Below, piece by piece: positions 2,102-63,990 of a stretch of 64,000 nucleotides of DNA (position 1 is its first letter; each line of letters opens with the position of its first letter). The position numbers and the translations under genes are program-made. The stretch lies in sequence record MT708547.1; one strand, given 5' to 3'. Below the pieces are notes generated by a model. It had not been told where the DNA came from, made no database searches, and was given only the letters and a program-made list of their open reading frames with translations.

Positions 2102-2593
2102 ATGACTAACGTTAATACCAATCTAGTAACTGATATCAAAAAAGTTATTACTTCTCATCATTTCTTTGCACCAGAAAAACAACGAGTCATCTCTGATATC
2201 AAAGAAGATGAACTTAGTATTATTATTCGTTTTAAAGAACCTGGTGATGAAATTTCATCACAGTTCACTGTACTTCGTGGTAAATTCCGCGAAGAAGGCG
2301 TTGACAAGATCCCAGCTTACATTCTTTTTATTACACTTGGTAGTGTAATTAAGCTGGAAATTGATGAAAATCTGGAGCGTTCATATAAATTTATGCTTGC
2401 ACCAGTTACAGATGATGATAACGTTGAACTGGATTTCAAGAATGATTTCACTGAAGAAGAATTCTTTCAGCAAAGTACAATCCATGATTTCCGTTCAGTA
2501 ACTTATGAACACGTCGAACTTATCAAAGATATGATTGAACCAGTTACCAGTTACGAGAAATATCTCGATGGTCAAGCTGAAGGCAACGAATAA
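2102..2593 (+). CDS. hypothetical protein, FQxS-motif paralog family
   Basis: C-terminal FTEEEFFQQSTIHDF. Confidence 0.8.
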   Translation: MTNVNTNLVTDIKKVITSHHFFAPEKQRVISDIKEDELSIIIRFKEPGDEISSQFTVLRGKFREEGVDKIPAYILFITLGSVIKLEIDENLERSYKFMLAPVTDDDNVELDFKNDFTEEEFFQQSTIHDFRSVTYEHVELIKDMIEPVTSYEKYLDGQAEGNE

Positions 2594-2598
2594 AAATA

Positions 2599-2624
2599 AA
2601 TAACCCACTTCGGTGGGTTATTTT
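2599..2624 (+). terminator. intrinsic terminator
   Basis: AATAACCCAC-TTCG-GTGGGTTATT followed by T residues, right after the stop codon. Confidence 0.85.
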
Positions 2625-2643
2625 CTATATAAGGATATAAATT

Positions 2644-3201
2644 ATGTTAAAAGAAATTCAAAAATTAACAAATTCAATTGTAGATTTTCTTAAAGATAAA
2701 AATGGTTTTAGTACTGAAGTATCAAAACAGGGTGTTCAGTTAATCGTTAAAAGTCCTAATGGTACTGAAACTTTGTATGATGTTTATGAATTGCTTTTAT
2801 ATAAACTTAGTGCTAATAAACTAGGTGGTGATATTCAGTTAAACATTAATGATAGTACTGAGGGTAAGATTTTTGCAATTAACACGAATGTAAATTTTGA
2901 TATACATTCTAAAATCCTCGAAATTAATAATTCATTTGATGATTTCAAACACGACACCATTCGTGGTGTTTTTGTTAGTACTCAATTATCTGAAAGTACA
3001 AATCCGTTTTCGGTACTAACTATGTATAAAAATGGTACATGGGTTCGTTACGATTTAACACTGTCGGAATTACTGTACGCTTGTGTAAATGGGTATAAAT
3101 TACAATTGAACGATTCAGGTTTTGTATACAATGAATTACGTGAATTGTGCGAAAATGTAAAAAAAGAAATGAAGCAAGAAGAAAATACAATATCCAAATA
3201 A
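2644..3201 (+). CDS. hypothetical protein
   Basis: 185-aa ORF with AAGGA ribosome-binding site. Confidence 0.7.
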   Translation: MLKEIQKLTNSIVDFLKDKNGFSTEVSKQGVQLIVKSPNGTETLYDVYELLLYKLSANKLGGDIQLNINDSTEGKIFAINTNVNFDIHSKILEINNSFDDFKHDTIRGVFVSTQLSESTNPFSVLTMYKNGTWVRYDLTLSELLYACVNGYKLQLNDSGFVYNELRELCENVKKEMKQEENTISK

Positions 3202-3217
3202 TGAGGTAGATCTCTGT

Positions 3218-3640
3218 ATGACATTACATGAAGTACTGAATAGTTTCTTTGAATTGAATATTTCAGAAATGAAAACCAAACAAAATAGACACCAACATAG
3301 TGTTTGGTATGATGCCCAACCACAACCGTTTTTAATCAATTTTAAAGAAACAGAAACATACACAATAATGAGATTTCATCATTTTGATGGTGAAAATAAT
3401 TACAGGGTATCATATGATGCAGGAACTGATCGACTGATTTACACAGTAATGGGTACCATTTCATCAACCATTACGATTGGAAACTTCTCTTCTTATAAAT
3501 CAGAAGATAATTTTTTTCAGGATTCACTGATTAATGATTACAATGATTTATCATTCGAAGATATTGACAAAATGATGAATATGTTCTATAATGTAAAAAA
3601 TACAAGTTTATCCCTATTTGGTGAAGATGATGAAATTTGA
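3218..3640 (+). CDS. hypothetical protein, FQxS family
   Basis: SEDNFFQDSLINDY. Confidence 0.75.
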   Translation: MTLHEVLNSFFELNISEMKTKQNRHQHSVWYDAQPQPFLINFKETETYTIMRFHHFDGENNYRVSYDAGTDRLIYTVMGTISSTITIGNFSSYKSEDNFFQDSLINDYNDLSFEDIDKMMNMFYNVKNTSLSLFGEDDEI

Positions 3641-4067
3641 TTTAGAAAAATTTCTGGATTTGGATTTAGATTCATTTTATATCAGAAAGTTTATTTTTAA
3701 ACCACACACAAATGTGGTTGATTATGCTGTGATTGAACTACATGAATCGGATTATACAATTTGGTACGATGTTGATGATTGTATTCAACTAAAGGAATGT
3801 GATGAATGTAAAGGTTATGTTCTGTTGTATGACCTCAATACAAATGAAATTACATTAAAAACTTCACATTATGATGAATACGGTATTATAACAAGACGTG
3901 AATGTGTTGCATTTTCACATGATGATTACACAGAAGAATCATTTTTTATGATTAGTACCTTACATGATGTTGGGGAATTTACATTTGAAACTTTCGATAA
4001 ATTTAATAAAATTTTGAAAAAGATTAAATCAATGATCAAGGAAATTGAAAATGAACAGTCCAAGTAA
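3630..4067 (+). CDS. hypothetical protein, FQxS family
   Basis: YTEESFFMISTLHDV. Confidence 0.75.
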   Translation: MKFDLEKFLDLDLDSFYIRKFIFKPHTNVVDYAVIELHESDYTIWYDVDDCIQLKECDECKGYVLLYDLNTNEITLKTSHYDEYGIITRRECVAFSHDDYTEESFFMISTLHDVGEFTFETFDKFNKILKKIKSMIKEIENEQSK

Positions 4068-19888: not shown

Positions 19889-20199
19889 GGCCCCTTAGCT
19901 CACGCTTTGGTTAGAGCAGACGACTCATCGATAAATGGTGACTTTCACAAGTAATTGTGATTGAAAAACTGGATGAATTCAGGGAAACCTTAACACATAA
20001 TGGTGATGGCAATCCTGAGCCAAGCCCAATAAGCGTATTGGGAAGGTGCAGAGACTAGGTGGTTCAGCACGATCTTGCTGTGTAATACACCAATAGCGTC
20101 CGGCATCCTTATAGGATGATGATATAGTCCTTTCTATAATGAAAATTATAGGTAAAAAGAATCGTTTGGTACTGTGTTCGACTCACAGAGGGGCCACCA
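19889..20199 (+). tRNA. ileX: tRNA-Ile2(CAT), ileX-like, split by a group I intron (exons 19889-19928 and 20160-20199)
   Basis: Spliced sequence GGCCCCT-TA-GCTC...GAGC-A-GACGA-CTCATAA-TCGTT-TGGTA-CTGTG-TTCGACT-CACAG-AGGGGCC-A-CCA, close to enterobacterial ileX (GGCCCCTTAGCTCA...AGGGGCCACCA). Confidence 0.88.
19929..20159 (+). mobile_element. group I self-splicing intron, 231 nt, ORF-less, probably IC3-like
   Basis: P AATTCAGGGAAAC (19976), Q AATCCTGAGC (20011), R GTGCAGAGACT (20046), S GATATAGTCC (20121); P1 exon UCAU pairs with GUGA giving a U-G splice-site pair; P7 GACTA/TAGTC; GNRA loops in P2 and P9; ends in G. Confidence 0.9.
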
Positions 20200-20204
20200 C
20201 ACAT

Positions 20205-20276
20205 TGTACTCTTCTCCTGTAAGGAGAATGACAAAAAGCTATCCGAAAGATAGAAAGCCTGAAATAACAGGGTACA
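20205..20276 (+). ncRNA. four-way-junction-like spacer element between tRNA-Ile2 and tRNA-Asn
   Basis: TGTAC/GTACA closing TTCTCC/GGAGAA, CTATC/GATAG and CCTG/CAGG hairpins. Confidence 0.4.
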
Positions 20277-20286
20277 TTTAATCAAT

Positions 20287-20369
20287 TGGTAGTTGGCAGA
20301 GCGGCTTTTGCGACGGACTGTTAATCCGTGTCAGAAATGACAAGACTGGTTCGACTCCAGTACTACCAG
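20287..20369 (+). tRNA. trnN: tRNA-Asn(GTT) with a long variable arm
   Basis: TGGTAGT/ACTACCA; ACGGA-CTGTTAA-TCCGT; 15-nt variable region GTCA-GAAA-TGAC-AAG; ACTGG-TTCGACT-CCAGT; G73. Confidence 0.85.
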
Positions 20370-20434
20370 CATATAAAAAATGAACTTCAGAACAATAAAT
20401 AATATCATAGAGGATATTATGAGGTCTGAAGTTC

Positions 20435-20980
20435 ATGGGAAGAAAGCAAACAGAAGAAACACGCAAAAAAATTTCTAATGCATTAAAAGCAAAAAATACA
20501 GTTTTACCCGAAAAAGAAATTATTGAAAAATACACAAACGGTATAGCTGTATATAAGTTAGCAAAAGAATACAAATGCCACAAAACAAGAATAAATTCTA
20601 TAATTGAAGCTAGTGGTGTTAAACGACCAATCGCTACAAATAAAAATAGATTTTGTGAAATTCATAAATGTAATTATGAAAAAAATCCACAAGGTAAGTG
20701 GAAATGTAATAAATGTGATATTCAACGTGTTTCTGATAGACGTAGAGAACTTAAATTACTTGCTGTGGAATATAAAGGTGGGTGTTGTGAAAAATGTGGA
20801 TATGATAAATGCATAGCTGCGTTAGAATTTCACCATTTAGATCCAAATGAAAAAGATTTTGGAATATCATCCAGTGGTCATACACGAAGTTTCGAAAAGT
20901 TAAAGATAGAACTTGATAAATGTATTATGGTTTGTGCTAATTGTCATCGTGAAATTCATGATGATGAAAGAAAAGAATAA
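20435..20980 (+). CDS. HNH homing endonuclease (NUMOD3-like N-terminus)
   Basis: GRKQTEETRKKIS; YKGGCCEKCGY...LEFHHLDPNEK...CIMVCANCHREIH. Confidence 0.9.
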   Translation: MGRKQTEETRKKISNALKAKNTVLPEKEIIEKYTNGIAVYKLAKEYKCHKTRINSIIEASGVKRPIATNKNRFCEIHKCNYEKNPQGKWKCNKCDIQRVSDRRRELKLLAVEYKGGCCEKCGYDKCIAALEFHHLDPNEKDFGISSSGHTRSFEKLKIELDKCIMVCANCHREIHDDERKE

Positions 20981-21554: not shown

Positions 21555-21637
21555 GTAATAATGTGATAGCTCAAATAGGTAGAGCGGGAGGCCAAAGTGC
21601 TGACTGGTTTGTGAGTTCAATTCTCACCCGTTATTAC
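21555..21637 (+). ncRNA. tRNA-like RNA or pseudo-tRNA with an aberrant anticodon arm
   Basis: D arm TA-GCTC-AAATAGGTA-GAGC; T arm GTGAG-TTCAATT-CTCAC; closing stem GTAATAATG/CGTTATTAC; middle arm GGCCA/TGGTT with a 10-nt loop. Confidence 0.65.
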
Positions 21638-21646
21638 TAAACTAGT

Positions 21647-21677
21647 AAGCTACCCTATGTTATTCGGGTAGCTTTTT
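21647..21677 (+). terminator. intrinsic terminator closing the RNA island
   Basis: AAGCTACCC/GGGTAGCTT followed by a T tract. Confidence 0.8.
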
Positions 21678-21703
21678 CTTTTTTTATAACAAGAGAGATT
21701 ATC

Positions 21704-22120
21704 ATGAGTAAAGTTACTTTACTGAATATTTTACAAGAATGCTATGAAAAACTTGAAAATTCCAATCCAAGTGTCATATTCAACTCATCATTTGATAATT
21801 ATTCTACTTCAAATTATAAAGCAAAAATTTTAGTATATAATCACTTTGATTTATCATCATTAAGTGATTGTAGTAACATTTACTTACACATTTGTGACTA
21901 CAATGATGATAGTGGGTATACTATGACGATTGATATTTACAAAGGATATTTTTATTATAAAAATAAAAAATTTGACAATTTTGAAAATTTATTCCCATTG
22001 ACTGAAGATACGATGTTTCAGTACTCAACACTTTATGACACATCATCCTTGACAATCGATGAGTTAAATTTTATAATGTCTATTAGTTTGGATATTCCAA
22101 TTTATGAAGCATCATTATAA
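21704..22120 (+). CDS. hypothetical protein, FQxS family
   Basis: LTEDTMFQYSTLYDT. Confidence 0.8.
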   Translation: MSKVTLLNILQECYEKLENSNPSVIFNSSFDNYSTSNYKAKILVYNHFDLSSLSDCSNIYLHICDYNDDSGYTMTIDIYKGYFYYKNKKFDNFENLFPLTEDTMFQYSTLYDTSSLTIDELNFIMSISLDIPIYEASL

Positions 22121-22137
22121 AATCTAGGAGCATTTTT

Positions 22138-22290
22138 ATGAAAATTAAGTGTTGTGTATGTGATTGTGAAATTGATGAAAAGCATGTATATGGCGAATGG
22201 GATGATTACTGCTCCGATTGCTGGGAATCTGAAGGACGTGATGCAGAACGATGGGAAGATGAGAGTGAGTGGGATGAGGATGAAGAATAA
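22138..22290 (+). CDS. 50-aa zinc-finger protein with a very acidic tail (not in the ORF track)
   Basis: AGGAG ribosome-binding site; MKIKCCVCDCEIDEKHVYGEWDDYCSDCWESEGRDAERWEDESEWDEDEE. Confidence 0.7.
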   Translation: MKIKCCVCDCEIDEKHVYGEWDDYCSDCWESEGRDAERWEDESEWDEDEE

Positions 22291-22386
22291 ACGTATGTTT
22301 AAAGTACTGTTTCTTCATGCGTTTTAATTTATAGAGGCTGATTCATTGAATCGGCCATTTTCTTTGTTAAAAAAAGAGATAAAAAT

Positions 22387-22794
22387 ATGAAAAAATTTCT
22401 TTCAAAAGAACACGAAGAAAATATTCTTAATGCATTGAGTGTATTTCCAGAGAGTGTCATAAGTAATAATAAGAATTCTACATATTATTATGGTAAAGGT
22501 AATTGGTTTTATTTTAGCGACAGTTCATATATGTGTGTATTAAATCTATGTACTGAAGAATATTCTTATTGTTTAAGGATCGATCCTCGTTATAAATTAA
22601 TCCTACTATGCGAAAAGAATGATGAATTTTATGAAAGTGAGATAGATGATACCGATTCATATATTAGTAATTTTTATCTCGAAGAAGATGTTTATTTTAT
22701 GGATAGTACTGTGAATGAAATTACTATTCCTTTTAGTATAATGAAACGTTCGCATGAATTTCTAAAATACAGCAGAGAAAAATTTCATGACTGA
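22387..22794 (+). CDS. hypothetical protein, FQxS family
   Basis: LEEDVYFMDSTVNEI. Confidence 0.7.
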   Translation: MKKFLSKEHEENILNALSVFPESVISNNKNSTYYYGKGNWFYFSDSSYMCVLNLCTEEYSYCLRIDPRYKLILLCEKNDEFYESEIDDTDSYISNFYLEEDVYFMDSTVNEITIPFSIMKRSHEFLKYSREKFHD

Positions 22795-23158
22795 TATAAA
22801 TGAAGTTATAGAGCATTTTTATAATTGGGTAATAACGGATCCAATAAAAACTGGATTAATTGAAAAATATAACTGCTCTATGTATTCTTATTGTTCAAAT
22901 AAAGCTACGATGTATAGTAAGGATGTTGATAATTATTTACTAATCACTGACGATGTAGTTTATGATGTATTTGACAATGAAATTGTCATTGATGGTGGTG
23001 ATGTTGATATTGTAAAATTACATGATATAGATTTCTCATGTACTGAATCGGCGGCGTTCCAATTAAGCACATTATATGATTTCCGATGCAGTACTGAAAG
23101 TATTGTATTATTATTGAAAATAGTACATATTTTAAGAAAAAAGAGAATGGTATTATAA
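22787..23158 (+). CDS. hypothetical protein, FQxS family
   Basis: CTESAAFQLSTLYDFRCST. Confidence 0.8.
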   Translation: MTDINEVIEHFYNWVITDPIKTGLIEKYNCSMYSYCSNKATMYSKDVDNYLLITDDVVYDVFDNEIVIDGGDVDIVKLHDIDFSCTESAAFQLSTLYDFRCSTESIVLLLKIVHILRKKRMVL

Positions 23159-45483: not shown

Positions 45484-48400
45484 TGTCTAACTGTCCACAT
45501 TGTAATAAAGAATTAAAAATTGACTACTGTGTATATATGAATGTAGAGACTTATGGTAAATCCGCATTAGCAACATCTAAATGTTGTGGGCGTGCTGTGG
45601 TGGTTTCTCGTGTAGTCAACTTTGGTATCAGTGCTTATAATGGTGAACGAACTGAAGATGATTGGGGTAACAGTATTCTACCAAAATCTAATGTACCACA
45701 AAGCAATATCAACGATGAACTCGCCATCAATGTTGTTGAACTTCTAAAATCAGATAGACTATATGAAGCATTGGAAATTATTCGTGGTATTAAAAATCCA
45801 CTGACTGCTGGTTGGTTAGTACAAGAAGTATTAAATGAATTAAATGTTCCAAGTCGTACACAAACAAAAAACTGGCTAATTAATGCTCTTTATAATGGTA
45901 AATGATTATGTTTGAATTATACAGATTCGCTGGAATTGCTATTGTTTTGTTGGGATTTATGTATATTTTAATTTGTGGGATGCTTTTATTCTTTAAGCAC
46001 AGTACATTATTAAATAAAATAACTCCAGAAATAGAAGATGAAGCATTTAAAGATACCTTTATTATCTTCTTTGTTGTTTTTGGAATTGGTGTATTAATAC
46101 TTGATATTGGTATACCAACCGCATGTGCTAGTGCATTATTTTCTTCTATTATACTATCCGCCGTAATTATGTGCAAAATAATTGATATACTAATTAAAAT
46201 TCGTAATAAATTACCACAGAGGTAAAATATTTTACAAAATAGAACTTTTAGGTTCTATTTTTTTATAAAAAGGACTATAATTTTATGCTTATTAAAGAAA
46301 CTGGCAGTAAAGTTAATTTTATTGATGTAAACGATGTATACGTAGGATATGATATTAGTCAGTCCTGTTGTGAACACGCTGGTTGGTTTATTCATCCAAT
46401 GCAATGTGAATCACCATATATTGAGGAATATGGTGATTCATACAGTGGTATTGTTAATAAAGAATTTGATTTAAATGGATTTGTATTTGATACTAAGTTT
46501 GTTGAATACTCAACCAAAGATACAGATTCTGGTGCAATGGTTATTTTCCGCATGGTTAAAGGTAATAATCAATTGTTTTTGCATCTATTCAATGTCCATA
46601 ACGGATACTATGGTCATGGTTTTGATACCAATCTTCCATGTGGGAATGGTTGTTTGTAAGAAATTAATATTAAGGTTGACTTCGGTCAACCTTTTTGCTA
46701 TTATGTAATTACAATTGTATACCGAGGATATTTAATATGTTCGCATTGCAAAATAAAAATACTAAACAGATAATGAAAGTATCTTATTATTTCACGAATA
46801 GTGATGCAGGGGTAGAATTTGATTCACAGGGTGATTATTTTTATTTAGAAAATGATCGTGAAGAACTGGAAAAACTACTTGAATTCTATCGTGAAGAAGG
46901 TAAAATAACACAGTTTGATGATTATCCAGAATGTGGGGTAGGAGAGTTGGATGGTTACGAAATAGTTGAAATTGAATTGGTAGTTAAATGAAAACACATT
47001 AGGAATTATATCATGAAAAACATCATCAAAAAAAGATTCAGGCGGTTATTCTGTAGTACTGAACGGTATTATTATCGGTGACGCAACAACTATGAAAGAA
47101 GCACGCAATATGATTGCTCAATACAAACGTAAACTTAAATACTCAAATTTAGTTCATAAGTATACTAAATTTTCCAACGATTTTAAGTCGAAATAAAAAT
47201 ATGAAAATTCAATTAAGTACTACACTACAAGACACAGAAAACAAAGATAATATTGAGGTACAAATTTTAGTTGATGTATCAAAACATGACACAGTACTGA
47301 TTAATATTGATGGTAAAACTTTTAAGTTAACAGATATTGAACGTATCATTGATTGTGCTGATAAATTAGTTAATTTAAGTACCGAATTCAAAGAAGAATA
47401 TAGTGAAGAAGTATCTGATTTAAAATATTTTGATATTGATTTCTTTAATCAACAGGGTGAACACAATAAAGTAACGCTTTTAGCAAAAGATCCTGCTCAA
47501 GCTGTGGTATCTTTCTATGGTTCTGCTCATGCGGAACTCCACCCAAACTCTACAATTGTCAGCGTAATGCTGAAAAAATATTGACAGTATGGTTTTCTTT
47601 TGATATTATGTATACATGTTGAGTGTACTGAGGATTTAATCATGCATGGTGTATTGACTTCACAAAGTATGAAAGTTGTATTCAAAGGTGAAGATGAAAT
47701 CAGTTTAGAATCTGAGATTGTTCAAGAATGTCGCAGCTTTTCTGAGTTTAAAGACTTAGATATTCATACACACGGTGATTATTTTCATCACTATACAATC
47801 CAGTACAGTACTAATAGTATTGAACCGAAAAACTTTGCACCACAAATTATGAAAGCAGCACTGCTATTGATTTCAATTGCAACAAAACGTGGATTAGTAC
47901 TAGTTAATTTATAATAGTGTTTGACAAATCTTAATGACTGCGGTACTATATCTATGTACCGCAAAACAACAAATTTTAATCTAAGGATATAAACATGAAC
48001 GTTACTTTCCATAAAACTGCTAACCACAAACATGAAATTCACATCAATGGTTTTAAAGCTGGTCTTATTCAACTTCTATCACATCATCCTGATCATAAAG
48101 TTAATGAGGAACAGCGTATGGATTGGCGTGTATTCTTTTGGGGAAAATATCAACAATTCCAAATGGATTATCGTGCAGTAGGTATCTGGCCTCAGACTCG
48201 CGGTTGTAATAGTGATATCTCTCTGAATCAAATGAAAAAAGATTTGGAATTTCTTTTGCAAAATAATATCGATATTGTTCTTCCTAAAAAGTATTTTGAA
48301 GATAAAGGATATGTATTCGCCCATTTCAATGACGGTGATATCTATACTATTGATACTGAATATCAAGATAAATGGACAGAATATTTCCATATCGGAGGAA

Positions 48401-53324: not shown

Positions 53325-53360
53325 AAAATGGTTGACGAAAGTCAGCCTTTTTTCTATAAT
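53325..53360 (+). promoter_or_regulatory. terminator/promoter hairpin cassette 9
   Basis: GGTTGAC-GAAA-GTCAGCC followed by a T tract; TTGACG-17-TATAAT. Confidence 0.8.
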
Positions 53361-53389
53361 AACTATACTTTAATTTAACAGGACAAAAA

Positions 53390-53731
53390 ATGAATAGCAT
53401 TCATTCAGTACTGATTCGTTTGCGTGATAGCAAAGAATATGGTTTAAGTGACAGAAAGAAAACTCATGGTATTTGTGAGTTACTACGCTTCTATGTTCGT
53501 GACAACGAACGTTGTAATGATTTCATTAAAGCAGCCTTTATCCACATCTACGGGGCTTATCAGCCGTTCCCGATTGAGGGAGATAGCCGAGGATATCATA
53601 AGAATCTGGACAAGTGGAATCCACGTACACAGCACGGTAAAACACGTCTTGAATTGCTAGACAAGCTCATTACTTTTGCTGATATGACGGAAAATCTTAT
53701 GTTGATTGAATTAAATAATATCGGTATTTAA
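53390..53731 (+). CDS. hypothetical protein, PIEG-domain paralog 3
   Basis: HGICELL...FPIEG...NLDKWN...HGKTRLELL. Confidence 0.8.
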   Translation: MNSIHSVLIRLRDSKEYGLSDRKKTHGICELLRFYVRDNERCNDFIKAAFIHIYGAYQPFPIEGDSRGYHKNLDKWNPRTQHGKTRLELLDKLITFADMTENLMLIELNNIGI

Positions 53732-53733
53732 AG

Positions 53734-53770
53734 AAAAAGGGTTGACGAAAGTCAGCCTTTTTGCTAATAT
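53734..53770 (+). promoter_or_regulatory. terminator/promoter hairpin cassette 10
   Basis: AAAAAGGGTTGAC-GAAA-GTCAGCCTTTTT; TTGACG-17-TAATAT. Confidence 0.75.
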
Positions 53771-54077: not shown

Positions 54078-54113
54078 AAAAGGGTTGACTTTGGTCAGCC
54101 CTTTTGTTATTAT
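54078..54113 (+). promoter_or_regulatory. terminator/promoter hairpin cassette 11
   Basis: AAAAGGGTTGAC-TTTG-GTCAGCCCTTTT; TTGACT-17-TATTAT. Confidence 0.8.
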
Positions 54114-54142
54114 ATTTGTATATTAAGTCAATGAGGTGTTGT

Positions 54143-55435
54143 ATTATGATTCGTTATGCTCTGCGTCATAGAACTTCCAAACAGTACGTTGGATTTCGTA
54201 CTGTGCCATGGGAATTTGGTACTGATATTCATTTGGATTTCGATGATGATTATATTTGGTTGAAAGAAGATCGCACATTAATGGATACACTTATTGAAAA
54301 TAGAAAGTCAAATGATGCATCGTTACAATTGAGTGATTCAGTACTGAAGGCGTTAAAAGATTATAAATTAGAAGTGATGGAAATTAATTTCCCAGATACT
54401 GATTGGTGGGATGATTAATGATTGTGAAAATACAATTTTAATTTCATAAACTAAATTATCTAAAGGTGAAATAATGCAATACTCTATCTATGCTCGTATG
54501 GGAGTTGATTATGAATGGAACAGACTTCGTACAGTGTACAATGAAGAGAAAGCAATTGAACTGAAAGAGTATTACGAACAAACATGGCGTATCGTTGAAA
54601 TTCGTAATGAAAGCAAATAAGCGTTGACAACATATATCAGTACTGTATAATATATACAATCTTAATCGAAAAAGGTAAAACAAAAATGAAAGTTACTCTG
54701 ACTGGTGGTACAATCAATGTAGCAACAATCAAATCAGTACTGGAAAACAATAGCCGAGTATATATTTCACTTCCAATTAATGATGTTTGTGAAATTTTAG
54801 TAACTCGTTTGGAATCACATTTTAACGGGTATATCAAACAAGATAGTATTGAAGTTAAATTCGCCGAACGAGATTGTGGTGAAATCCAGTGTATGGCAAC
54901 AGAATACTTTAACATCAATATGATGGAAAAAGCTGCAATGGCTGCCGTTGAGCGATATAATTCAGAAGATCCATGTGAATTTTCTAATTATTCAGTGGCA
55001 TTTGAAAATACATTTATTAAAGAATAACAAAATGAAGTCATACCTTTTCCTATAATATAGTATTACTAAAATAGAGAATATTGTATGAAACTCGATTATG
55101 AATTAATAAGCAAAACGTTTAAATTAATATATTTTATTTTTGGTTATAGTAAAAATTCTAATTTTTTTCCAATATTATTTGACCTTGATGAAAATGATAT
55201 TCACCAAGAATACAATAAAATATTGAATCGAGAGTTACATTTATCAATTAAAGAATTAGTAATTAATAAGTATATTCATTATAAAAATAAAAATTTTGAT
55301 GGATATTTGCAAATTATTGGATATGATTTTGATACATCGAAATTAATAGTAAAGGCACCTAATAATACGGGAATTTTCCAAATAACTTGGGCGAATTTAA
55401 AAATTTTTGACAGTATACCATCAAAAAAAGGTTGA
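54143..55435 (+). CDS. hypothetical ORFs about 54143-54418, 54686-55027, 55085-55435, plus sub-60-aa ORFs near 53810 and 54474
   Basis: Ribosome-binding sites; promoter TTGACA-16-TATAAT at 54624-54651. Confidence 0.6.
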
Positions 55436-55461
55436 CGAAAGTCAGCCTTTTTTGTTATAAT
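55423..55461 (+). promoter_or_regulatory. terminator/promoter hairpin cassette 12
   Basis: AAAAAAGGTTGAC-GAAA-GTCAGCCTTTTTT; TTGACG-18-TATAAT. Confidence 0.8.
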
Positions 55462-55488
55462 GTGTTTATTAAGAAAGGAGAAATAAAA

Positions 55489-55560
55489 ATGCATCCTCGT
55501 TTAGTTAGAAGTCAGAAAATCCAGAAAAACTTCGATTCAATGCTCGCAGTACTTACATAA
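55489..55560 (+). pseudogene. orphaned duplicate of the 5' end of the AAA+ ATPase gene (23 aa)
   Basis: AAGGAGAAATAAAA-ATG; MHPRLVRSQKIQKNFDSMLAVLT* versus MHPRQQRSLQIQKNFESMMAVLE at 56630. Confidence 0.8.
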
Positions 55561-56527
55561 TTTTTCCATATATTTTAACTACTTGTTCTGTACTGTTTTT
55601 TATAAGTTTGATCATATGTGATAAAGTTTCATAACAATTTTCATAATATGCAATTCTAATAAAATTATATCCTTTTCCAATTGCATAATTTGTTTTTATT
55701 GAATCTCTTAATTTCATTGATTCATAGTGTCTATATTCTTTATGAATAAATTCTTTATATTCAAAATGTTGTTCACCATCATATTCGATTAACAAGTTTA
55801 ATTCAGGAATATATCGATCAAATGGCAAAGGACGAATATTAATACAATCATCAAAACGTTTTTCTTTTTCAAATACAGAAAATAAAGGATCTATAATATC
55901 AACTAATTTATATGACTCTGTTGAATTGCATTCTGGACATTTCGTCCCCTGATGGATATAATGAAAGAAATTAGTACTACACCAATTATGACCAATATCA
56001 CATGTTAAATCTAGATATGTGTTATCAGTTCCTATATATACAAATGGTTTGTAAGTATACCCATATTCATTGCATTTATTAAGTACTAAATGTTCAGCTT
56101 CTTCTTGAGTATACATAATATTACCACTACATTTAGGACAACCGCTACCTCCAATAAATTCAGAAAATGTGGTACTGTTCCATTTATATCCACAATGACA
56201 AGTAATATACAAGTATGTCTTATCAGTACCTATATATTTGAATTTATCACATCTATAATTATTCATTAAACACTGCATACCAACTTTGAAATTTGCTTCT
56301 TCTTGTGAATATTTAGAAATACCTAAACATTTTCTACATTGAACACCTTTCTTTGATATAAATTTGGCATAAGTTGTTGTATCAGTATAACAACCACAAG
56401 GTAATGTAAGTTTCAAATATGTTTTAAGAGAACCAATATAAACAAAATCATATAGTATTATATTGTTGTTATAACATATTTCCATCACATTATTATAAGC
56501 AGTTTGTTCATCAATTTTGGATGGCAT
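55553..56527 (-). CDS. putative homing endonuclease: tandem CxxC zinc-ribbon repeats plus a DUF559/Vsr-like PD-(D/E)xK nuclease
   Basis: Repeated LxLxCxCGxxW.TT....GxxCPxC units; PLPFDRYIPELNLLIEYDGEQHF...RDSIKTNYA...FIRI; the only credible minus-strand gene in the window. Confidence 0.8.
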   Translation of the reverse strand: MPSKIDEQTAYNNVMEICYNNNIILYDFVYIGSLKTYLKLTLPCGCYTDTTTYAKFISKKGVQCRKCLGISKYSQEEANFKVGMQCLMNNYRCDKFKYIGTDKTYLYITCHCGYKWNSTTFSEFIGGSGCPKCSGNIMYTQEEAEHLVLNKCNEYGYTYKPFVYIGTDNTYLDLTCDIGHNWCSTNFFHYIHQGTKCPECNSTESYKLVDIIDPLFSVFEKEKRFDDCINIRPLPFDRYIPELNLLIEYDGEQHFEYKEFIHKEYRHYESMKLRDSIKTNYAIGKGYNFIRIAYYENCYETLSHMIKLIKNSTEQVVKIYGKIM

Positions 56528-56629
56528 TTTATTAAATCCTTTTAGATTTCTTTGTAAAAATGTATTTAGGTCTTGACTTTATTGGGGAATCATAGTAAGA
56601 TGTTCAACATACAGTTAAGGAGAAACAAA

Positions 56630-57400
56630 ATGCATCCACGCCAACAACGCAGTCTTCAAATCCAGAAAAATTTTGAATCAATGATGGCCGTACTGGAAAG
56701 TATGCTAGTTCCTAATAGCTCGATAAACAGTATGGTGATTTCAGGCAGTCCTGGTATTGGTAAAACCTACTCCCTGTCTAAACGTCTGGATAAAGCTCAT
56801 GCTCAAGCTGAATGTAATGTAACTACGGTTAGTGGTAAAATGACTACCCTAGCACTTTTCGAAGTACTGTACAAAAACCGGTTCAGTACTAATATTATTG
56901 TACTTGATGATATGGACAGTATTTTTGATTCAGAAGATGGTATGAATCTGCTCAAAGCAGTACTTGATACGTCAAAACGTACAGTATCATATATGTCATC
57001 TTCTAAGTACTTAAAAGATAATGGTATCCCAAGTACTTTTGATTTTTTTGGTAAAATTGTATTCATTACAAATAAAGATTTAACTCGTATTGCTGCATCC
57101 AAAAGCAAACAAGCACCACATTGTCAAGCTTTGATTTCTCGTTCAGTGTATATTGATCTTGAAATTCAAAGCAAAGAAGATATCATGATTCATATCGAAA
57201 ATGTTATGCTCAGTACTAATATTCTTGAAAAATATAATGTTAATCAAAATGGTAGTAACATGATTCTTAATTGGATGCTGAAACACCAGGAACGTCTACA
57301 GTCTCCATCATTACGTACACCTGTACTTATTAGTGCTCTGTATAATTCCAATCCATATGATTGGGAAGAAATTTGCGAAAATGTTTATCTGGAGAAATAA
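56630..57400 (+). CDS. AAA+ ATPase
   Basis: Walker A GSPGIGKT, Walker B IIVLDD, LLKAVLD; AAGGAG before the ATG at 56630; promoter TTGACT-17-TAAGAT at 56574. Confidence 0.85.
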   Translation: MHPRQQRSLQIQKNFESMMAVLESMLVPNSSINSMVISGSPGIGKTYSLSKRLDKAHAQAECNVTTVSGKMTTLALFEVLYKNRFSTNIIVLDDMDSIFDSEDGMNLLKAVLDTSKRTVSYMSSSKYLKDNGIPSTFDFFGKIVFITNKDLTRIAASKSKQAPHCQALISRSVYIDLEIQSKEDIMIHIENVMLSTNILEKYNVNQNGSNMILNWMLKHQERLQSPSLRTPVLISALYNSNPYDWEEICENVYLEK

Positions 57401-61905: not shown

Positions 61906-62511
61906 ATGACAATATTATTCAGTACTAAAGATCCGGTAGGCGATTCTAGTAATGTAGTTAGTAACTTCTACAATCATGTTCGTCGTAAGACACATCATGG
62001 TTCATGGGGTGCTGATAAACATGCACGTAAGCTATTCCCGAGGGGAAAAGCGTATGATCGTCTGTTTGAATTACAATTGGATTGTTGGAAAAACCGCTAC
62101 GATTATTTCTAAGAGAATACTATGACTACACAACTAACCGATGATGGTCCGATTACTGTACAAGTACTGTTTTCTTTTGTACAAGCTACCAAAGATGAAC
62201 TACCAGCACTCTTTGTTTGCACTGCGGAGTACTTAGAAGCTAACGAAGAGACTGACAATGACATTACGCCAGATCAATTCCATGATATCTTTGAAGCTGG
62301 TGAACCAAAAGATGAAGATGATTGCATCTTCTACTACGTCAAAGGTTCTACACGCTTCCGCTTCTATGACATGGGCTATGGTACATGGGGAATTGAAGAA
62401 TTGAAAGATGGTGAGTATGATTGCGTAGGTGCGGTTGATGAGAAAGCATTGATGGCTCTACTCGGACAAGCTGGCCTCGTAAAAGATGATTCATTGATCC
62501 AGTACTTCTAA
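61906..62511 (+). CDS. hypothetical ORFs 61906-62112 and 62122-62511 (very acidic)
   Basis: Ribosome-binding sites; the second is D/E-rich and visibly higher in GC. Confidence 0.7.
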
Positions 62512-62514
62512 AAT

Positions 62515-62550
62515 AAAGGGTTGACTTCGGTCAGCCTTTTTTGTTATTAT
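62515..62550 (+). promoter_or_regulatory. terminator/promoter hairpin cassette 13
   Basis: AAAGGGTTGAC-TTCG-GTCAGCCTTTTTT; TTGACT-18-TATTAT. Confidence 0.8.
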
Positions 62551-63857: not shown

Positions 63858-63990
63858 GATTCAGTACTGATAATAATGAATAGGAATTGATAAGAATAGT
63901 ATAGTACTAATAATAATGAGTAGGAATTGATAAGAATGATTCAGTACTATTAAGAATGATTAAGTACTATTCAGTACTATTCAGTACTGA
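63858..63990. repeat. iteron-like tandem repeat with six AGTACT sites phased at multiples of 10 bp
   Basis: Units of 40, 40, 20, 10 and 10 nt; AGTACT starts at 63863, 63903, 63943, 63963, 63973, 63983. Confidence 0.85.

Follow-up and report, generated by a model that had tools for sequence, protein, structure and literature searches.

How does a gene for a nuclease come to lie inside the start of a conserved coding sequence, and where does the start that is now in use come from? This question is raised by a locus of Klebsiella phage Muenster (MT708547, 346,937 bp; Alcyoneusvirus, a RaK2-like jumbo phage), in the last 64 kb of the genome. This stretch is called the window below, and its positions equal the positions of the MT708547 record minus 282,937. 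In the record, a minus-strand gene annotated as "putative endonuclease" (CPT_Muenster_550) is followed by a gene annotated as "P-loop NTPase" (CPT_Muenster_551). Between genes 549 and 550, a second ribosome-binding site (RBS) and start of the NTPase gene, which we call the stub, carries no annotation, and the hairpin/promoter cassette in front of it is labelled as a terminator. A sequence-only reading of the window had described a left gene start, a minus-strand nuclease gene and, to its right, a new promoter, RBS and full-length gene, and every one of these elements was found where it had been placed (Table 1). The best explanation overall, which we hold to be likely, is that a foreign homing cassette consisting of the nuclease gene, the donor promoter and RBS and the donor gene start replaced the start of the NTPase gene and left the resident start stranded.

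The empty site in relatives

In K64-1 (contig L010), RaK2, phiKp_21, RCIP0023 and OU509535, the flanks of the locus are about 96% identical to those of Muenster and 1.1 kb is absent, which defines the empty site. In K64-1, the promoter cassette and the NTPase gene come immediately after the upstream gene. A three-way alignment of this empty allele with the two Muenster gene starts showed that the left copy equals K64-1 from the -35 hexamer through the motif AGTACT, over 122 nucleotides (nt) at 100% identity. The stub itself is likewise 100% identical to the empty allele up to 55553. Beyond this position, K64-1 runs on into its own NTPase gene. In Muenster, the stop codon of the nuclease gene follows as its complement: the last base of AGTACT (55553) is at the same time the first base of TTA (55553-55555). 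The earlier claim that similarity stops at AGTACT, at the stop codon of the nuclease gene, is thereby confirmed.

The same empty allele was found in assembled contigs. In run X13, the dominant contig (depth 1454) joins 55553 to 56749 via 54 letters that correspond to gene nt 66-119, so that the comparison with nuclease-free relatives suggested by the sequence-only reading yielded the empty allele in five relatives and in this contig. X13 also holds a nuclease contig of 1126 nt (55625-56750) at a depth of 5.5; the two alleles may reflect a mixed phage population or carry-over between libraries. The junction between stub and nuclease gene is covered by contigs of X6 (from wastewater, with one contig spanning 54906-57041), X7 and X14. 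An assembly artefact was ruled out, as independent contigs from several other studies cross this junction.

The right-hand gene start is a foreign allele

The differences between the NTPase genes of Muenster and K64-1 are distributed very unevenly, with 52 in gene nt 9-204 and only five in the remaining 567 nt. Of the codons affected, 22 encode the same residue in both phages and 15 a different one. At the nucleotide level, the right-hand gene start is 77% identical to K64-1; at the protein level, the identity of residues 1-68 is 78% to K64-1 and no higher than 61% to any other homologue, while residues 69-256 are 100% identical to the K64-1 protein. The AGTACT that the resident gene carries at nt 60 reads CGTACT in the foreign patch. 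The two gene starts within Muenster are about 75% identical over about 79 nt and differ at 18 of 66 coding nucleotides and 6 of 22 residues; the equivalent pair of starts in contig L006, which stems from a plant-associated metagenome, was aligned by blastn with E = 4e-8. What is duplicated comprises the RBS and the gene start only. The sequence-only reading had counted the promoter as part of the duplication as well, and this part did not hold: the two promoters are unrelated, and the alignment with K64-1 revealed no sequence similarity between the imported intergenic region and the resident promoter cassette.

The right-hand start had been described as a recoded replacement. Since 15 of the changes alter residues, the right copy is not a silent recoding; it is instead a foreign allele that extends about 140 nt beyond the duplicated part before the divergence stops abruptly. 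The same feature excludes a duplication in place followed by drift. A tandem duplication of the gene start, in which the right copy diverged and the nuclease gene landed between the copies, would account for two RBS and gene-start copies in direct orientation. This scenario is, however, contradicted by the mismatch profile, by the asymmetry between the left (100%) and the right copy (77%) in their identity to K64-1 and by the unrelated promoters, and none of the relatives examined carries the duplication without the nuclease gene; we therefore consider it extremely improbable. The other part of the earlier proposal, namely a homing element that carries a replacement 5' end, agrees well with the data, in that the right start arrived with the nuclease gene and the left start is the stranded resident one. 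From these comparisons, the imported unit is the nuclease gene, the intergenic region with promoter and RBS, and about 204 nt of the donor gene (55554 to about 56833).

With regard to the donor, a distant blastn search of 50,697 phage records returned a best match of 77.6% for the patch. As residues 1-68 are in addition closest to K64-1, the donor was a relative of the RaK2 group that has not been sampled so far. Scanning IMG/VR for the nuclease by pattern gave no relative, and no stub-free donor was found in public runs, where every contig covering the left junction has the stub.

The protein affected by this exchange was named an AAA+ ATPase in the sequence-only reading. It matches phrog_1250 (E = 2e-102) and contains the Walker A motif GSPGIGKT. 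Its scores against PF00004 (21.0, cut-off 21.2) and AAA_22 (23.1, cut-off 27) are below threshold, the matches to Orc1/Cdc6 and Hda are far under their cut-offs, and a sequence search of the PDB gave no relative. Judged by these matches, AAA-like P-loop NTPase (phrog_1250) appears to be the safer name. As the hybrid gene illustrates, a conserved jumbo-phage protein can be foreign in its first 68 residues, and such patches mislead phylogenies and annotation.

The cassette is shared between two phage backgrounds

Contig L006 shares the nuclease (100% protein identity), the stub and the left junction with Muenster. Between 55388 and 56814, the two sequences differ at only 2 of 1427 nt, compared to 96 of 4021 nt in the flanks, which corresponds to a divergence of 0.14% in the cassette versus 2.4% in the flanks (Fisher p = 1e-10). 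The flanks of L006 differ from Muenster at 55117, 55229, 55360, 55369 and 55387, where the empty-site phage of X13 also departs from Muenster. Going by these shared positions, the cassette seems to have been added to an X13-type background in L006 and to a K64-1-like background in Muenster. In L006, the foreign patch ends on the right between gene nt 177 and 186 (56806-56815), in Muenster it ends after nt 204, and the contigs of X7 and X6 differ at 56827/56833. A near-identical cassette in two backgrounds with different right ends argues that the cassette moves as a unit.

The nuclease gene encodes a Vsr-like protein with zinc-ribbon repeats

The nuclease consists of three zinc-ribbon repeats of about 67 amino acids each (residues ~1-200), followed by a Vsr-like PD-(D/E)XK domain (residues 202-324). 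It matches phrog_559 with E = 1.6e-39 and also PHROG 9084, "homing endonuclease". Matches to Pfam were confined to values below threshold (DUF5889 with 17.4 bits at a cut-off of 27.1; DUF4379 with 16.3 at a cut-off of 24.5), and NCBIfam gave no match. In an AlphaFold2 model with a predicted local distance difference test score (pLDDT) of 92.5, each repeat forms a helix and a zinc-ribbon hairpin with conserved cysteines, and the C-terminal domain has an alpha/beta fold. Foldseek alone gave no match at E <= 0.001 for this model, and the fold became clear only by an exhaustive structural search, in which residues 202-324 matched Vsr with a Z-score of 11.3 (root-mean-square deviation 2.5, 110 aligned residues) and the catalytic domain of I-Bth0305I with a Z-score of 8.9. 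A sequence search of the PDB with the nuclease yielded no more than chance-level matches to Tdp1.

Across 32 homologues, no variation occurs at D237, E248, H254, D275 and K278, and the conservation of D250 is 90% or higher. The open reading frame (ORF) is intact, and the C-terminus of the protein aligns with the C-termini of its relatives, so that the stop codon at the left junction is the natural one. The Vsr-like assignment is drawn from fold and motif, through the predicted structure. Taken together, the modelled protein has the hallmarks of a free-standing homing endonuclease and would be expected to be active as such. The family phrog_559, with its combination of zinc-ribbon repeats and Vsr-like domain, is very widespread, biochemically uncharacterised and commonly mislabelled as HNH, and Muenster provides a testable member.

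The nuclease lineage is faithful to one locus

The six proteins closest to the nuclease, at 44-55% identity, belong to five lineages, represented by E. coli phage ECO103 4-12-1 and the contigs L007/L008, L009, L012 and L013. All six genes lie directly at the 5' side of a gene for an NTPase homologue of 255-257 amino acids (48-70% identity). The nuclease gene is divergent relative to the NTPase gene in four lineages and co-directional in L012, where the homologue has 472 amino acids (2501-3919) and positions ~534-2422 of 121Q (L005) are replaced. When the NTPase start of ECO103, L007, L009, L012 and L013 was compared to its own locus by tblastn and blastn, no stub was detected. The duplication is therefore not intrinsic to the nuclease lineage, and the sequences indicate that it arose when the Muenster copy of the nuclease gene entered a K64-1-like background.

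The same region also houses other nuclease genes. In KP13-7 (L003), a 304-amino-acid endonuclease of phrog_681 is encoded on the minus strand (2426-3340) at the same intergenic spot, directly after the T-run of a terminator; the insert opens precisely at the complement of this enzyme's stop codon and supplies its own promoter for the NTPase gene. This enzyme was rejected as a relative of the Muenster nuclease (BLASTP E = 1.6). In 121Q, a 487-amino-acid CapR-domain endonuclease is encoded just upstream of the NTPase gene (600-2063). The region 5' of the NTPase gene is thus a hotspot of nuclease genes across genera. Elsewhere in the window, 19928-20979 replaces positions 21578-22810 of K64-1 beside apparent tRNA genes; an HNH endonuclease (gp275) is annotated in this part of K64-1 and the Muenster sequence is a different one, which makes this another polymorphic nuclease locus.

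These data bear on the question of whether the nuclease has anything to do with the spread of the cassette. It could be a mere passenger without activity or relevance, in which case ordinary homologous recombination among co-infecting jumbo phages would account for the shared cassette as well as for the unequal patch ends. The window is indeed a mosaic relative to K64-1, with about ten replacements or indels in 64 kb, many of them at repeated promoter cassettes. A passenger would, however, not be expected to keep an intact ORF with conserved catalytic-type residues and a protein that is 100% identical in two backgrounds, nor to be faithful to one locus across lineages in which the identity of the NTPase drops to 48%. 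Moreover, the at least tenfold drop in divergence coincides exactly with the cassette. On this evidence, we regard the passenger explanation as unlikely.

Proposed origin of the hybrid gene

The core of the homing-element proposal put forward in the sequence-only reading is borne out by the hallmarks of the nuclease, the imported gene start and the movement of the unit between two backgrounds. In the scenario that we favour, a nuclease of a lineage at home in RaK2/121Q-like jumbo phages would have entered a K64-1/RaK2-like genome from an unsampled donor that was about 23% diverged. The founding event would have been a one-sided, illegitimate repair of a double-strand break in the start of the resident NTPase gene. 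Having invaded the donor gene, the right end of the break would have been extended leftwards, first through the donor promoter and next through the nuclease gene; a barely resected or unresected left end would then have captured the newly made strand at resident nt 65/66. Accordingly formed ends would differ in kind: the left join would have occurred without homology or with a microhomology of a few bases, and the right join by homologous crossover inside the gene. The left join would have stranded the resident promoter, the RBS and 22 codons.

Once formed, the cassette could home conventionally, with the upstream gene, the promoter and the 65 nt of the stub as left arm and the gene from about nt 205 onwards as right arm. 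As the flanks of the cassette are identical to those of nuclease-free relatives, spread by ordinary homing is possible. In alleles without the nuclease gene, the enzyme would cleave the start of the NTPase gene, presumably between resident gene nt ~40 and 205, with 65/66 as our best guess. All conversion tracts include gene nt 1-177 and the crossovers lie at the first good identity beyond, which would place the cut at or left of nt ~177. Judging from the alleles, the carrier is probably protected from its own nuclease, as the insertion interrupts the old site and the new gene start is diverged.

Several observations weigh against this scenario. That an illegitimate join should have its left junction precisely at the nuclease gene's natural stop codon is a neat coincidence, but the insert of the unrelated KP13-7 nuclease likewise begins exactly with the stop codon. 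With the stub-free donor missing from the sequences searched, the founding event is reconstructed rather than observed. The island of low divergence shared with L006 is explicable by general phage recombination instead of nuclease-driven conversion, and the minor nuclease contig of X13 is possibly cross-sample carry-over.

In a more specific version of the homing scenario, the cassette would add to introns and inteins a third mode in which a homing endonuclease can reside within an essential coding sequence. Here, the nuclease would cut at its own insertion point (nt 65/66), bring a full replacement start with promoter and RBS and render the carrier doubly immune, with the old site split and the new copy diverged. 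We put this forward tentatively, as a possibility that is rather doubtful at this level of detail.

Anatomy of the locus and the stub

The features of the locus are compiled in Table 1. The resident promoter (TTGACG, 18 nt, TATAAT; 55432-55461) matches the consensus at 11 of 12 positions and is TG-extended; in Muenster, its cassette is directed into the stub and, in antisense, across the entire nuclease gene in the direction of the NTPase gene. The ORF of the stub (55489-55560) comprises 22 native codons and 23 codons in all before the stop. In the imported intergenic region, the plus-strand promoter-like site (TTGACT, 17 nt, TAAGAT) and the minus-strand one (TTAACT, 18 nt, TATGAT) each match at 9 of 12 positions. 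The RBS of the nuclease gene lies at about 56537-56540 and the second RBS of the NTPase gene (AAGGAG) at 56617-56622.

Table 1 Features of the nuclease/NTPase locus in the Muenster window.
Feature	Position	Strand	Remarks
Resident terminator-hairpin/early-promoter cassette (GGTTGAC..GTCAGCC, T-run, TATAAT)	55430-55461	+	Same as K64-1
Stub: resident RBS AAGGAG (55475-55480), ATG (55489), first 65 nt of NTPase gene	55475-55560	+	
AGTACT at left junction	55548-55553		Last base is the end of homology to the empty allele
Free-standing nuclease gene, CPT_Muenster_550, 324 amino acids	55553-56527	minus	
Imported intergenic region, 102 nt	56528-56629		Weak divergent promoter-like sites and both RBSs
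Foreign 5' part of NTPase gene, gene nt 1-204	56630-56833	+	From mismatch profile against K64-1
Right-hand crossover interval in Muenster	56834-56896	+	Between gene nt 204 and nt 228 or 267
Hybrid P-loop NTPase gene, CPT_Muenster_551, 256 amino acids, ATG at 56630	56630-57400	+	Foreign residues 1-68, resident residues 69-256

In addition to its proposed origin by stranding, the stub might be kept for a function, either because the early promoter feeds the NTPase gene by read-through or because its antisense RNA restrains the nuclease. Such a role would fit the better consensus match of the resident promoter compared to the imported one, the lack of a plus-strand terminator-like site between 55461 and 56630, and the complete identity of the stub in Muenster and L006. 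Against this, homing would in any case require the stub as its left arm, and nuclease-free relatives have exactly the same sequence, which is why its conservation is no proof of a function. The public runs searched included no RNA run. We consider a function somewhat unlikely; it would add to homing as the origin of the locus rather than compete with it.

AGTACT and other junctions in the window

The coincidence of the left junction with AGTACT had led the sequence-only reading to suspect a link between this motif and recombination. The palindrome occurs 193 times in the window compared to 13.8 expected occurrences, a 14-fold over-representation. Six copies lie within 355 nt at 56863-57217, for example, and the end of the window (63863-63988) has a tandem array with spacings of 40, 40, 20, 10 and 10 nt. 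The imported cassette of 1.3 kb contains only two copies (55973 and 56082), and the foreign gene start none. When the 64-kb window was surveyed for indels and replacements against the corresponding 70 kb of K64-1, 10 breaks, equal to 20 junctions, were obtained. Two of these touch AGTACT, the left junction and one at 62501-62506, where about 0.4 would be expected (Poisson p ~0.07), and the other 18 are 28-404 nt away from the nearest copy. Examining other insertions in this way, as had been proposed, gave no significant association in our judgement.

Alternatively, breaks or recombination might occur preferentially at AGTACT, a palindrome that is extremely abundant in this phage clade, and the motif would then have fixed the join of the cassette. 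In favour of this alternative, one could cite the over-representation, the exact end of the left junction, the further junction that straddles the motif and the right-hand crossover interval of Muenster, which lies just before or across the AGTACT at 56863. As the commonest hexamer, AGTACT is, however, also the likeliest chance microhomology. The crossover in L006 (56806-56815) is not at the motif, and neither are the great majority of junctions in the window, for which the excess of two over ~0.4 is weak evidence. Overall, this alternative seems to us very unlikely. At least four of the junctions lie instead at repeated hairpin/promoter cassettes of the form GGTTGAC-N4-GTCAGCC, of which the window holds at least ten and none would be expected. 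Several replacements and indels between Muenster and K64-1 have their start or their end at such cassettes (46653-46691, 53328-53757, 54082-54120 and 62506-62536). In this alignment, it seems to be at the repeated cassettes that crossovers usually exchange modules.

Comparison with known systems

With regard to the catalytic domain, the Muenster nuclease resembles I-Bth0305I (EDxHD) and the Vsr-like homing endonucleases, with which it shares the Vsr-like PD-(D/E)XK fold and a conserved core of acidic residues and histidine, although the sequence identity is only 12-17%. The two differ in context and architecture: I-Bth0305I is intron-encoded and has another DNA-binding region, whereas the domain of the Muenster nuclease follows three zinc-ribbon repeats of the DUF4379/DUF723/CapR type.

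Intronless homing in T4-like phages involves intergenic, free-standing nucleases (SegB to SegG, MobE) and a co-conversion tract of flanking donor sequence (PMC2988022). As in Muenster, the nuclease gene is present or absent among close relatives, a co-conversion tract is found and the carrier allele differs from the target. In T4, however, both junctions are homologous and no part of a gene is duplicated, whereas Muenster has one non-homologous junction inside the target gene. Furthermore, the Seg and Mob enzymes belong to the GIY-YIG or HNH families and the Muenster nuclease is Vsr-like. For the T4 td intron, one-sided homology still gives acquisition via microhomology junctions, according to the summary of Parker et al. 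1999 in PMC2988022; as summarised there, this one-sided system is an engineered laboratory system, and it resembles the founding event proposed for Muenster. Our literature searches yielded no phage report of a gene-end duplication by a homing endonuclease, which is weak evidence of absence.

The closest counterpart is found in fungal mitochondria, whose mORF (mobile endonuclease ORF) "gene hybrids" show the layout of Muenster in mirror image, at the 3' end of the gene. Such hybrids have been described for atp6, atp9, cox2 and nad3 of Glomus (Beaudet et al. 2013, PMC3630166) and for atp6 of Allomyces macrogynus (Paquin et al. 1994, as cited in PMC3630166). In both the fungal hybrids and Muenster, an endonuclease ORF is accompanied by a foreign, diverged gene end that is in use, and the native end is stranded beyond the ORF. 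In the mORF hybrids, the native end is nearly the same as in sister taxa, while the inserted copy has an identity of 64-81% (PMC3630166), compared to 100% and 77%, respectively, in Muenster. The fungal mORFs encode LAGLIDADG or GIY-YIG enzymes and replace the carboxy-terminal (3') end, to which the mORF is often fused in frame. In the bacteriophage, by contrast, a Vsr-like nuclease is encoded on the opposite strand and the 5' end is replaced, so that the cassette must bring its own promoter and RBS. If the proposed origin is correct, the locus would be a clean natural example of a homing endonuclease entering a coding sequence without an intron or intein, by carrying a substitute gene end. Since the empty site is known, along with another background and a conserved target locus, it offers a well-controlled natural system for the invasion of coding sequences by free-standing endonucleases, as a 5' counterpart to the fungal gene hybrids.

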